Positions 36,919 to 42,353 of a stretch of 64,000 nucleotides of DNA are shown here, one piece after another. Made by a program: the position numbers and the translations under genes. Position 1 is the stretch's first letter. Each line of letters starts with the position of its first letter. The notes under the pieces were generated by a model, which made no database searches, had not been told where the DNA came from, and worked only from the letters and a program-made list of their open reading frames with translations. Source of the stretch: Haliotis cracherodii (Eukaryota); assembly GCF_022045235.1 (NCBI RefSeq), contig NW_027266264.1, positions 24,738,001 through 24,802,000 of the forward strand. Reading direction: 5' to 3'.

Positions 36919-39900
36919 ATGGCGGCGGCTAGTGCCACTGCAGGCAACAACTACCAGTCATCGACTGGGTTGTTAATCGTAACCTATGTTGGTGACGTCA
37001 CAAAGGCACAAGCAGATGGTATTGTTGTCAGCGAGGGGAAATCATTTCGGAGAATGGGATATGTTGCAACAACTCTTGTAAGTATGGACTCAGAATTCGA
37101 CACGAATCGCAACAAGCTGATTCAGAAAGAAAAAGCCCATTTCAAACCATGGATGGTGTACACAACTGGGAGTTGCGCCGAGTTCGTATCGGTGATTCAT
37201 GCTATTGTCATACCCCGGGGAGAGAAACAACCAATCCAGGAGTGGAAGGAGAAAATGACCTCATTATACAAGAAAATACTCCAAGAAGCTGAGAAGGAGG
37301 GTATCTCTATCCTGGCGGTACCTTTACTAGGCTCTGGTAAGACAATAATCTGAGACGTATGGGGATGTGGTGATATGTTTCTATGTGTTTATCCTAAATG
37401 ACCGTCAGGACCAATGACCGACAGGTCACGTCTCAATATGTATTAATTTGATCTCGTTCAACATTTCAGTATCCCCAAATATGCTTGTCTAAAGTGGCAT
37501 GTGTGTTTAAGGTACATATTAAAGACAAAACGTTGTCCTTAATCTCAAGAAATCTCTGTTAAAAGATTGTCCATTAATCATTTTTCGATTTGACTGGGGG
37601 CGGTCAGGTAGCCTTGTGGTTAAAGCGTTCGCTCGTCACGCCGAAGACCCGAGGTTCGATTCCCGACATGGGTACAATGTGTGAAGCCCATTTCTGGTGC
37701 CCCCCCTCCCAATGATATAGCGGGAATATTGCTAAAAGCGGCGTAAATCATACTCACTCACTCGATTTCGACTGGTTGAATATGAATCGCTGTCAGATGG
37801 CGATGGTGCCAGCTGCTCCTAAACGTTTAAGTGATCTGTCCCTTAAAACTAAAACTCTCCACGCTACAGTCATGCGTCTGTATACATCTGCAGGAAAGGT
37901 GATTGCGCTTTCCATGTTAGGTTGCACTTCATGTATTGTGCGGGGGCACGGGTGGCGCAGTCGTCAAAGCCACCGCAATTCGTTGTGCAGAGTTGCGTTT
38001 CTTGGATACCCCAGAACTATGATTGTGGTTTCGAATCCCGGCTCGCCCCAATTATGTTTCTGGGTTTATCAGCACCATACCCATGCTCGTGGGTTTCTCA
38101 GAAGTGGTAAACGTCTGTGAACTGCATCACTACGGGCTTTCCTCCCTCATTAAGCTGACACGCCATGATATAACTGGAATACTGTTAAAAGCTGCGCTAA
38201 ACCCAACACACTCATAAATAATTTATAAATCAACAAGGTTTGTTTTCCTTTCTAAAAGCAATAACTATGACTTTTGGATGCGAATGTAACTGTACATGCA
38301 TTTTATGGGCAACAGTATGCATATGTTCAGTGACCTACGTATCCTATGCATACATGAAAGAAGTAACACTCAGAGATAGCGAGTTTTGTGATGTTGATTT
38401 GTTTGTTGTTTAACGCCACATTCAGCAATATTCCAGTTAGGTCTGTAAATATCGCTTCTGGATCAGACAATCCAGTGCTTGACGCCATGAACATGGATCC
38501 ACGCAATTGGGATACGATGAAATGCATCAACCACGTCAGCCAGCCTGACCACATCGATCCCGTTAGTCGCCTCTTACCACAAGCATAGTCGCCTTTTACG
38601 GCTATGTGATGTACACGTGTTTTGGAAACTAAACCTTTGTTTCTAACTAAAGCCAAAGCCTGTGAATTGTCTAATCGTTTATTCAGGTAAATGCAAGGTA
38701 AAACCAGCAGACGCTGTTGAGGTGGCAGTCCGTGCTATGTTCTCTTATAAGAGAAAGTCTCTCGTCAAGGTACTGCTCGTGTCAGACAGTGAGGACATTG
38801 TGGACCAGCTGGCTACTCAGTGTGCCTACAACAGCAGTGTGACAGGTGGAAAACCCCTTTATCAAAGACCTCCACCAAACATTAAAACGGAACGCCCGCT
38901 TCCAAAACCCCCGTCTTCAAACCCGAAATCAAAATCAAGACTTGGTGGAGGGACCGATAGCAGTTGTTCAAGCCTGAAGAGACAGAATGGAGACAGATCA
39001 GATTCCTGCAGAAACAGCGATAACAATGGCGGTGGAATGCTGCTCCGTAGTGGACGACAACTACCGCCACGCCCACAAAGTAAGGGTCTATATGGTATAG
39101 AAAAGATAACTACCACGAACAGAAATCCATCATCTGGCGGTAGACCCGACACAAGAACAAGCCACAGTGGCAGTGGGAACAGTCAGGTCGGAAGTGAGCA
39201 CAGTCACAGAGAGAGAAGAACATTGTATGACCAGGATGTCCAGAAGGAGAATCTGAAGACGAGACCAGAGAGAACACTGGGCGGTAGGAACAGTCATGTC
39301 GAAAGTGGGGACAGCCACAGAGGGAGAAGAACATTGTATGACCAGGATGTCCAGAAGGAGAATCTGAAGACGAAACCAGAGAGAACACTGGGCGGTGGGA
39401 ACCATCATGTCGGAAGTGGGAACAGTTACAGTGAAAGGGGGTACAGTCATAGCGGGAGAAGCACATGGTATGACCAGGATGAGGAACATGATCTGAAGAC
39501 GAGACCAGAGAGAACACAAGGCAGTGAACTAGAGAGGACCAATGGGCAAGCTGGTAAGGCGTATTACGGGACTGAAATGGTTGGACATGATGTACCAAAA
39601 GCACTGCAACACCGCTGTGATATCAGTGGCGGGGCCATACCAAAGATCAAAAACAAGGCACAACATAACGATGAGGATGATGATGAGAATGTGGTGCAAC
39701 AAAAGAGACTTGCTCCTGAAAGACATAATTATGAAGAGGAAGATAATGATGACATTAATAATGATGATGATGATGAGGAGGAGGAGGACGAAAGTGTGAA
39801 CCATCGTGGTGATGACGACGATTATAATGGTGGCGGTGCTGCTGCTGCTGCTGCTGACGATGATGATGCAAAGACAAGTAAACGTTCGGCATATCAACAG

Positions 39901-42353
39901 ATGACGAGGGGAGACAGGGTTAATTCAAGCAAGAAATCTGAGGAAGGAGCTGTTTTGAATACTGATTTTAGTGAGCCTGACACCATTCTTAATACAACTG
40001 GTGAGCAGATTCCATACAGAAATAAAAAGGGATTCAGTGAAGAAAAAATGCCATCAGACAAGACATCAGGTCCAACTGAAACACAACTAAATGGTTATGA
40101 AAGTGGCTCTGGGAAATCCCCCAATACATGCGATGGTGTTACTCAGCATATGACAAACTTAAGTATCTCTGACGTGACTGGACAACAAAGCGCACGCAAT
40201 AGTGAAAAGGTGAATGAAAATAAACCAGCATCTCAGATCTGTCCCATATGCCTGGATGAAATATCAGACCCAAAGATGCTTGACAGATGTGGACACGTGT
40301 TCTGTAGAGTCTGTATCGAGAACAGTTTTGCCAGTTACAAACCCGTGTGTCCCAGTTGCAACATGGTGTATGGCGTCTTAACGGGGAACCGGCCGGAGGG
40401 GACCATGGATGTAGCCTTCAGCGGGGAGCACCTGCCTGGGTATGAGACCTGTGGAACGATTACCATCACGTACCGCTTCATTAATGGGATACAAGAGGTG
40501 AGTTTTTGCCAATTGTATTTATGGCAGGTAAAAAGTGATTGTTTTCATGGATGTCAAGGGATGGACTTTTGTTTGTTGAAGATGAGGGATAAGTATTTCC
40601 CCTCACTTTTGAGGAATAGGTGAGGATATTACATGTTCTCTGGTTGGAAACAAGAATAATTAACGCTTGGAATGTATGTATATCAGGTTCCTATTAATAG
40701 GTTAAATTTGTTGAGTTGTGGAGTACTAACATTAAAAAAGATATCAAAGGCAAAATTCGAATAGTTTCAGACTGTGGGCTCATGTTTTGCTCAAAATTGC
40801 CCCCTAACGAATTCGGGCACTCTTGCATGTGGACGCTTATATATACACGTATGCAAAGCTGCCGAAGCTGCCCAGTGGGGATCAAAACACTGCAGTTGAT
40901 CCATAAGCCCCTGACTCTTACATGTTGGATGAAATAAAAGAAAATAGTAAATGTTTGCAAGGAACGACACTGTTTGTTTGTTGCTTTACGCCGCACTCAG
41001 CAGTATTCCAGCTATAGGACGGCGGTCTGTAAATAATCACGTATAGACCAAACTATCCAGTAATTGAATCATGAACATCGATCTACGCAATTGGGACACG
41101 ATGACATGAATTAATAAGTGAACCTGACAATCCGATCCCATTAGTCTCCTCTGTTAATGCGACATGCATGGGTTGCTTAAGACCAATCTTTAACCGGATC
41201 TCCATGGGTCAGGAACGTCACTGAACAAGAGGCTACGGACACATGGCAAACAAAATTGCATTAATAGCATGGTGAACTTTACAAAAATTCTATTGTGAAA
41301 GAGTTGTTTCGCCATTGCAAGTAACACGAAAATAAATCATGATGATCTTCTATTCAACTGGGATATTGTATTGTTTGTTGTTTAACGCCGCACTCAGCAA
41401 TATTCCAGCTTATGACGGCGGTATTCAACAAGGAAAAACACTTACATTATGAATGCTGTATGATAAATTGTGGCCATTATCGATACAATTTCATACCCGT
41501 CATAGTTTGTTGTCAATCTCTGAACATTGTCAGGCTGGTCACCCCAACCCTGGACAGTCGTACAGGGGCACCACACGTGTAGCCTACCTGCCAGATTGCG
41601 CAGAGGGAAGAGATGTTCTCCGCCTCCTGAGGAAGGCGTTTGACAGGAAGTTAACCTTTACCGTCGGCCGTTCTACAACTACCGGTCAAGAGAATGTCGT
41701 AACGTGGAACGACATCCACCATAAGACGAACATGGAAGGTGGACCTACGAGGTAACCCCTTATGGTTATATGATTGAATTGAGATATCGAATCTATATTT
41801 AGATTTAAAGTTAGAAATCGCAGAGTTATTTCTCATGACGCTTGGAACACCCGGATATTAATCTATCAGAACGATGGGGATTCTCCCACGTCTGCGTCAA
41901 CTAATTCAACCGCTTTTTTGGTGGGTAAGGAATCGGGGAAGACTAAATAAGTAGCTGCTGTGTCAACATTGGTTTTGTTTATTTGTTGTTTAACGCCGCG
42001 CTCCGCAATGTTTCAGCCTGATGGCGTCAGTGTCTAAAGGACAATGGACCTGTTAGAAAGGTCTGCCAATTCACACTGCCGACTGGCAGTTATTTTCAAT
42101 CCTACACAGCTATCTCTTCCACATATCTTGTGTGTTTTCATCTATAAAAGTACAACTTAAATCCCCAGTGCACATTGGCATTAGTGGCATCCGATGGCAT
42201 AATGATGCTAGACGATGAACGGATGCGATACCCACAGCTCACTATAGTAGGTATGTTTCCATGTTTGCATCCAGATTCGGCTACCCTGACGACACCTACT
42301 TGACCCGAGTGAGGGAAGAACTGGCCAGCAAGGGAGTGACGGGAAGCAGTTAG
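36919..42353 (+). CDS. DTX3L: Gene C: macrodomain-containing DTX3L-like (Deltex family) E3 ubiquitin ligase, macro - linker - RING-HC - DTC, 841 aa, 4 coding exons (36919-37336, 38687-40497, 41534-41751, 42275-42353)
   Basis: Macro exon as in A and B. Exon 2 ends with [29 protein letters not shown]...CPSC and the DTC start [13 protein letters not shown]...[22 protein letters not shown]|GTGAGT (phase 0). Exon 3 reads [21 protein letters not shown]...[33 protein letters not shown]...AG|GTAAC (phase 2). Exon 4 after CATCCAG reads [26 protein letters not shown], the canonical Deltex C-terminus. The symbol denotes family similarity, not proven orthology. Confidence 0.92.
37597..37761 (+). mobile_element. 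SINE family 1, orthologous insertion in gene C intron 1
   Basis: Same position and TSD as 9329-9493. Confidence 0.9.
39184..39520 (+). repeat. Same 111-bp coding repeat, about 3 units, in gene C exon 2
   Basis: Two full [14 protein letters not shown](R/K)PERTLGG units plus a degenerate [18 protein letters not shown] unit. Confidence 0.93.

Follow-up and report, generated by a model that had tools for sequence, protein, structure and literature searches.

The gene considered here, gene C, occupies positions 36919-42353 on the plus strand of a window from the black abalone Haliotis cracherodii, the window being the whole stretch of 64,000 nucleotides that was analysed. Its product unites an N-terminal macrodomain, a disordered linker, a C3HC4 RING finger and a complete Deltex C-terminal domain (DTC) in one chain, an arrangement proposed in a preliminary description of this DNA and borne out by Pfam, with AlphaFold2 (AF2) and Foldseek supporting the macro fold. 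Gene C is a member of a tandem array of at least eight genes that combine a macrodomain with an E3 ligase module (macro-E3 genes), and four of these lie in the window, namely A (8707-11297), B (20407-26671), C and D (50185 to beyond 62829). Sequence comparison points, with good confidence, to an intact array member that would encode a DTX3L-type ligase in its pre-PARP9, macro-bearing form, with a divergent and apparently non-catalytic macrodomain and a function suggested by homology. Gene C is an ordinary, rather divergent member of a known family.

The gene model consists of four exons (2526 nucleotides) with 841 open codons followed by TAG, as read from the list of open reading frames and the junction sequences. 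All introns are of the GT..AG type, with the donors GTAAGA, GTGAGT and GTAACC and with acceptors ending in ..TTCAG, ..GTCAG and ..TCCAG. The junction phases (1, 0 and 2) are consistent, and the sites, phases and frame of the four-exon, 841-residue model put forward earlier are all borne out. The start ATG at 36919 stands in the context ACAACATGG, and an acceptor AG at 36912-36913, just before this ATG, implies a non-coding exon upstream. The exons were searched singly, while the whole protein was analysed through its public counterpart P0002, which is annotated as an "uncharacterized protein" (Haliotis cracherodii, 805 amino acids) and to which the RING/DTC end of exon 2 is 100% identical in the protein search. 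P0002 equals the gene C product minus one linker repeat (39238-39345, 36 amino acids), and this segment is either a small retained intron or a difference in repeat number. The features of gene C are as follows.

36919..37336, plus strand: exon 1, phase 1, with the N-terminal three quarters of the macrodomain; Asp26 (GDVT) is encoded at 36994-36996, and Pfam Macro gives 24.7 bits
37337..38686, plus strand: intron 1, GT..AG, with high-copy tRNA-like repeats, probably short interspersed elements (SINEs)
38687..40497, plus strand: exon 2, a single open frame of ~1.8 kb with the macrodomain end, linker, RING and DTC part 1
38687..38832, plus strand: last strand and helices of the macrodomain at the start of exon 2, with loop 2 GSGKCKVKP and VLLVS; the AF2 macro fold covers residues 8-191
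38833..40239, plus strand: disordered linker within exon 2, with a predicted local distance difference test (pLDDT) score < 35
39034-39057, plus strand: GMLLRSGR motif in the linker
39169-39425, plus strand: tandem repeat in the linker, 111-nucleotide unit, 2.3 copies (Tandem Repeats Finder)
39238..39345, plus strand: in-frame GT..AG segment of 108 nucleotides, equal to one repeat unit (36 amino acids) and missing in the annotated P0002
about 39746-39871, plus strand: acidic Asp/Glu/Ala tract in the linker
40240..40359, plus strand: C3HC4 RING finger (PF00097, 41 bits)
40381..40497, plus strand: DTC part 1, Pfam profile positions 1-39, at the end of exon 2
41534..41751, plus strand: exon 3, DTC part 2, phase 2, profile positions 41-110 (118 bits); catalytic His at 41717-41719
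42275..42353, plus strand: exon 4, DTC part 3, profile positions 113-133 (27 bits); Phe at 42276-42278, Glu at 42318-42320 and TAG at 42351-42353

The DTC profile is colinear over two introns, with only the split codons missing, which excludes chance as the cause. On the whole of P0002, Pfam reports the DTC with 203 bits over positions 1-133 and Macro with 31.3 bits, the cut-off for Pfam Macro (PF01661) being 22 bits. The three domains expected from the preliminary description, Macro (PF01661), RING and PF18102, are all recognised in this way. The motifs GDVT, HAIV (FHAIV-like), PLLGSG (spanning the junction of exons 1 and 2), IHHKT, FGYPD and VREEL are present, and the linker of ~430 residues is disordered and rich in repeats. 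Orthologues and paralogues of P0002 were found in H. rufescens, H. asinina, H. rubra and Gigantopelta aegis, and nearly all of them carry precomputed RING, PF18102 and PF01661 assignments.

The ligase half follows the plan of the Deltex family, as the RING is followed directly by a complete DTC (PF18102) in the Pfam analysis. The best match of this DTC among solved structures is DTX3L (3PG6; E 6e-49, 170 bits, 144 residues, ungapped), whereas gaps are needed for DTX2 (160 bits, 168 residues) and for DTX1 (139 bits). Named vertebrate homologues among the 120 best DTC matches are all DTX3L or DTX3L-like. Judged by these alignments, the DTC appears nearer to DTX3L than to DTX1/2/4.

The catalytic set of DTX3L consists of H707, Y719 and E733, as correctly given in the preliminary description, and is equivalent to H582, H594 and E608 of DTX2 (PMC11460948, PMC10810221). 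In the alignment these residues correspond to H769, F781 and E795 of P0002, with spacings of 12 and 14 that are the same as in DTX3L and DTX2; the equivalent of H707, counted from the alignment, is the first His of IHHKT. The earlier statement that His and Glu are intact and that Phe occupies the Tyr position is correct. This Phe is no deviation, being the majority state at the Tyr719 position across the DTX3L-type proteins compared (113 Phe against 14 Tyr), occurring in tenrec, elephant, echidna, birds, frogs and most invertebrates. The third pocket position of gene C is aromatic, within the aromatic-or-His range of Deltex proteins. PF21717, PF21718 and PF23222, the RRM/KH-like domains of vertebrate DTX3L, were not found on P0002 by Pfam, and PARP9 is absent outside jawed vertebrates (PMC10221186). 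Gene C is therefore of the DTX3L type in its catalytic module and not an architectural orthologue of tetrapod DTX3L.

Moreover, the same combination of domains is widely distributed among animals. When the conserved DTC end of P0002 was used for searching, PF01661 was found together with RING and DTC in 51 of the 120 best DTC matches. This macro-RING-DTC architecture is present in Cnidaria (Dendronephthya, Montipora, Xenia, Actinia and Oculina), in Mollusca (gastropods, a chiton, and bivalves including Pinctada, Mizuhopecten, Mya, Mactra, Solemya and Saccostrea), in Echinodermata (the crinoids Antedon and Anneissia), in Hemichordata (the acorn worm Glandiceps) and in Chordata (Ciona and amphioxus, the latter under the source name DTX3L). 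Five invertebrate proteins were checked with Pfam, which confirmed the architecture in each, with Macro scores of 82-157 bits over the full profile and canonical loops. Vertebrate DTX3L entries carry PF21717, PF21718 and PF23222 and no macrodomain; the absence of a macrodomain from vertebrate DTX3L, claimed earlier, thus holds for the vertebrate entries among these 120 matches.

Two further claims of the preliminary description do not survive this comparison. It had regarded the fusion as a solution peculiar to this animal, but the architecture extends from Cnidaria to amphioxus and Ciona, and the search across Metazoa shows that it is already in public databases. It had also offered the fusion as a third targeting solution in the Deltex family. 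A 2026 preprint describes the loss of the DTX3L macrodomain at the rise of PARP9, and the macro-bearing form is the ancestral state of the DTX3L lineage, as was already pointed out there. Literature searches on the induction of DTX3L-like genes in molluscs and on domain-survey reports of macro-Deltex fusions gave nothing usable beyond this preprint.

Among known systems, human DTX3L, whose partner is PARP9, resembles gene C in having a C3HC4 RING followed directly by a full DTC, with an ungapped alignment to 3PG6. The stretch encoded by exons 3-4 of gene C shows 63-70% identity to vertebrate DTX3L proteins, the catalytic His and Glu are shared, and an aromatic residue occupies the third pocket position. 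Unlike gene C, human DTX3L has the RRM/KH-like domains D1-D3, borrows the macrodomain of PARP9 and carries Tyr719, whereas gene C has its own N-terminal macrodomain, a long disordered repeat linker and Phe, the usual family state. The family of gene C includes the Branchiostoma lanceolatum "DTX3L" (P0117) and proteins of Antedon (P0069), Dendronephthya (P0053), Saccostrea (P0038) and Ciona (P0094), which share the order of macrodomain(s), RING and DTC, as well as a DTX3L-type DTC. These proteins differ from gene C in their canonical macro loops (VNAAN...GGV and SSGI[FY]G; 82-157 bits) and often in extra N-terminal regions or two macro copies, while in Haliotis the macrodomain is the first element of the chain and highly derived (31 bits). 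DTX1, DTX2 and DTX4 (WWE-WWE-RING-DTC) also place a domain that reads ADP-ribose or poly(ADP-ribose) N-terminal to RING-DTC in one chain, but this reader is a WWE domain and not a macrodomain, the DTC alignment needs two gaps, and His594 stands in place of Phe.

ADP-ribose-linked ubiquitin, a product of Deltex ligases, is a hybrid modification that was discovered only recently and whose targeting in cells is not yet clear. Natural macro-RING-DTC proteins, with all domains in a single chain, would offer a simple and convenient model for studying how a reader steers DTC activity, and they document the form of DTX3L that existed before PARP9. Gene C itself adds little to this, as its architecture is common, catalogued and described in a preprint, and the homologues with canonical macrodomains (amphioxus, crinoids, corals and oysters) are better test objects.

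Two variants of the architecture were met in these searches. P0129 from Endozoicomonas atrinae, a bivalve symbiont, has 1360 amino acids with three macrodomains and a full animal-type DTC, without RING, and is encoded on a 748-kb contig. Its DTC scores 179 bits and is 64% identical to the abalone DTC, and the protein looks like a horizontally acquired effector that mimics the host. The second variant, P0001 (H. rufescens LOC124131666 isoform X2, 980 amino acids), contains one macrodomain, one RING and two consecutive DTCs (2 stretches, 368 bits), which are either a real internal duplication or the read-through of two tandem genes.

For the macro half, AF2 was run with P0002 and ten family sequences. 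Residues 8-191 form a six-stranded alpha/beta/alpha domain with pLDDT values of 84-96, and the linker (residues 192-619) remains below 35. Foldseek with this model retrieves macroH2A, PARP14 macrodomains 1, 2 and 3, Af1521 and the PARP9 macrodomains, with a target-normalised template modelling score (TM-score) of 0.72-0.86 and a probability of 1; for the top matches (macroH2A, PARP14 macrodomains 1-3 and Af1521) the score is 0.78-0.86. A feature search of the ESM Atlas also gives Macro clusters, and the closest solved macrodomain by sequence is PARP14 macrodomain 3 (4ABK/7D2C, E 1.7e-4). The view that the N-terminal domain adopts a macro fold holds on this modelling. A word-based search with the macro part returned Haliotis proteins only, and a full HMMER scan with exon 1 gave only 37 clusters, which means that the macro subtype is rare and not that the architecture is rare. 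An assignment of the gene C macrodomain to type 1 or type 2, attempted by comparison with bivalve proteins that have two macro copies, gave mixed scores.

The pocket was mapped by HMMER/BLAST alignments to PARP14 macrodomain 1, macroH2A1.1 and PARP14 macrodomain 3, together with 124 aligned macrodomains, and compares with the canonical state as follows.

Adenine-contact Asp: canonical GD[IV]T; kept in gene C as D26
Loop 1 Asn motif: canonical VNAAN; VSEG in gene C
Loop 1 glycines: canonical GGV; MGYV in gene C, with the first Gly lost and the second (G47) kept
Loop 2: canonical SSGI[FY]G; G138-S-G140-K-C-K-V in gene C, with the first two Gly retained, the hydrophobic-aromatic pair replaced by Lys-Cys and the third Gly by Lys

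Asp occupies the D26 position in 96 of the 124 aligned macrodomains and is near-invariant in the gastropod family. The most conserved columns among the gastropod paralogues (~37% identity) include D26, T28, E39, G40, F43, G138, G140 and G142.

Several observations weigh against reading gene C as an intact macro-bearing ligase. Both altered stretches of loop 1 and the altered loop 2 belong here, as does the Cys of gene C at the Gly142 column, where 90% of the family has Gly. The Pfam Macro match is weak, with 31 bits on P0002 over profile positions 45-118 only (45-104 for exon 1 alone). When the macrodomains of paralogues A, B and C are compared with one another, the ratio of nonsynonymous to synonymous substitution rates (dN/dS) is 0.95-1.9 (~22 changes), and purifying selection is not visible. 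The AF2 model of the RING-DTC part is poor (pLDDT 30-58) because of the shallow alignment; that part of the model was not used, and the fold of RING-DTC rests on sequence homology. In the three RNA-like runs, no contig with gene C letters covers exon 1, and the literature searched contained no biochemical study of any macro-RING-DTC protein. The role in defence considered further below is an inference.

The pocket changes give room to a second explanation, in which the macrodomain is a degenerate pseudo-reader that has kept its fold without binding ADP-ribose and acts as a scaffold, a protein-interaction surface or a binder of another ligand, leaving ADP-ribose recognition to the DTC alone. 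Such a state fits the missing canonical residues, namely the Asn of loop 1, the first glycine of the GG pair and the hydrophobic-aromatic pair of loop 2, and also the Cys at the otherwise conserved Gly142. The Pfam match covers the C-terminal two thirds of the profile with 31 bits, compared with the 82-157 bits of the same architecture in other phyla, and the paralogue dN/dS of about 1-1.9 agrees with it. The macrodomain can do without the DTC, since genes A and B keep the former but carry another RING in place of the latter. On the other hand, Asp26 is near-invariant, the gastropod family shows no variation at G138 and G140, gene C retains G47, and the pocket loops are ~2.5x enriched in conserved columns. 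PARP14 macrodomain 3 is also devoid of NAAN/GGG, has the same x-S-F-x loop and was crystallised with ADP-ribose (4ABK). Taking both sides together, the pseudo-reader is a serious possibility that we hold tentatively and place somewhat short of probable.

PARP14 macrodomains 2 and 3, which are non-catalytic readers of ADP-ribose, resemble the macrodomain of gene C in lacking NAAN/GGG, in the GD[IV]TK...AD.IV start and in the S-F loop. They are unlike it in their low identity (~20%), in their other loop 2 and in being part of a PARP with a catalytic domain and not of an E3. For the ADP-ribose reader named in the preliminary description, the macro fold and Asp26 are borne out, but the loop residues listed above are lost and the reading function is not a given. 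The odds that the macrodomain of gene C would bind plain ADP-ribose appear roughly even.

Hydrolase activity requires Asn/Ser and Gly on the flanks of loop 1, together with a hydrophobic-aromatic pair within loop 2 (PMC10221186). Since the macrodomain of gene C is without these residues, such activity is unlikely. This bears on a third explanation, in which the macrodomain would be an eraser, that is, an ADP-ribosylhydrolase that proofreads or removes the ADP-ribose-ubiquitin mark left by the DTC, a role that has been proposed for PARP9 macrodomain 1. Macrodomain 1 of PARP9 and of PARP14 is a hydrolase acting on ADP-ribose-linked ubiquitin (PMC10810221), and a complete set of catalytic motifs is found in the amphioxus, crinoid, coral and bivalve macrodomains that are fused to RING-DTC. 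Gene C, with VSEG...MGYV and G-S-G-K-C-K-V, lacks what PMC10221186 requires, and an eraser function is extremely improbable for it.

If gene C is the macro-bearing, DTX3L-type ligase that we prefer, its mode of action may be outlined by homology. The RING would recruit a ubiquitin-charged E2, and the DTC pocket next to the RING would bind the ADP-ribose moiety. His769 and Glu795 are predicted to activate the 3'-OH of the adenine-proximal ribose as the ubiquitin acceptor, as in DTX2 and DTX3L, and the product would be ADP-ribose-linked ubiquitin on ADP-ribosylated proteins or nucleic acids. The macrodomain, divergent and presumably non-catalytic, would be tethered by the ~430-residue disordered repeat linker and would most plausibly add or tune target recognition.

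The surroundings of gene C show how variable this group of genes is. A search of the whole assembly finds eight macro exons of the gene C type within C1:24.714-24.818 Mb and at least 14 intact matches to DTC exon 3 genome-wide, plus several with stop codons. The macrodomains of genes A and B are 88% identical to that of gene C, and both genes end in another RING without DTC (P0011 consists of Macro + RING only); gene B has a giant repeat of ~31 copies of a 37-amino-acid unit. The DTC is present in gene D and in two genes outside the window, the array region extending to 24.822 Mb. The exon 1 sequences of A (8707-9124), B (20407-20824) and C (36919-37336) differ at 18-19 of 418 nucleotides, and almost all of these changes alter the protein. 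This suggests relaxed or diversifying selection, with counts too small to tell the two apart. Positive selection on the macrodomain was considered and dropped, because the ~22 changes behind the dN/dS of 0.95-1.9 are too few for a call. In the linker, which otherwise changes fast, the motif G[ML][LV]LRSG[RQ] is kept in orthologues of four Haliotis species; the linker comparison did not find a GMLLRSGR-type motif in more distant paralogues. GMLLRSGR may resemble the arginine anchor with which herpesvirus LANA binds to the acidic patch of the nucleosome.

What is specific to this locus is the array of at least eight macro-E3 genes, in which the macro pocket is derived, E3 modules have been swapped and repeats vary, a pattern typical of invertebrate immune gene families. 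The array is probably immune-related, and gene C would serve in innate, probably antiviral, defence, as suggested by the expansion of the family, by paralogues that evolve near-neutrally or under diversification, and by the analogue in vertebrates. A bolder proposal would make the vetigastropod macro-E3 array a fast-evolving defence module. Its re-tuned pocket would read another ligand, such as ubiquitylated ADP-ribose or ADP-ribosylated nucleic acid, its output would be diversified by E3 swaps (genes C and D have a DTC, genes A and B a TRIM-like RING) and by the growth of linker repeats, and the conserved GM[LV]LRSGR motif would direct the ligase to chromatin. We consider this combined proposal rather unlikely.

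Evidence on the transcription of gene C came from three RNA-like runs (X1-X3) and one DNA run (X20), mapped at 90% likeness. X1-X3 behave as RNA, as the exons are covered and repeat-free intron bins (e.g. 37361-37547) have zero depth; X20 covers everything. Contigs that fit gene C span 39614-40374, 41609-41751 (0 differences, 12 nucleotides overhanging the end of the exon) and 42273-42400 (1 difference, overhanging exon 4 on its upstream side). Additionally, one contig spans 38760-40374, from the macro C-terminus to the RING. A spliced contig (36912-37335/38686-39002) was rejected as proof of the exon 1-2 linkage of gene C, as it carries the letters of paralogue A at 17/18 and 12/12 sites (29 of 30 in all), gene C being marked by letters such as 37020 T, 37051 A and 37145 A. 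This contig, the only one shown to jump intron 1, establishes the homologous exon 1-2 junction in paralogue A.

These results bear on the explanation that the four-exon product is not made, either because gene C is a decaying or silent paralogue or because the macro exon is not combined with those of the RING-DTC. The three RNA-like runs cover exon 1 and the opening 320 nucleotides of exon 2 by contigs of the paralogue A type only. Tandem arrays also often contain dying copies, and several DTC matches elsewhere in the genome have stop codons. Set against this, the 841 codons form an unbroken frame and the splice sites are canonical, paralogue A splices at the homologous exon 1-2 junction, and proteins of this architecture have been annotated in many phyla and in four species of Haliotis. 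The absence of a C-type contig is weak evidence, since contigs drop minor variants that are 96% alike, and it neither shows nor excludes the use of exon 1 of gene C. The macro fold is itself split by intron 1, with its remainder in exon 2, which runs open for 1.8 kb into the RING and DTC, so that the linkage of macrodomain and RING does not depend on splicing. A product that is not made is very unlikely, and the intact, macro-bearing ligase is preferred.

Introns 1 and 2 contain high-copy repeats (37548-38669 and 40914-41474), with a summed contig depth of 1e5-1e6 in every run. Their loose ends resemble a tRNA T-arm (GGTTCGATTCC...), and many false joints occur between the two introns. By sequence, these repeats are probably tRNA-derived SINEs.

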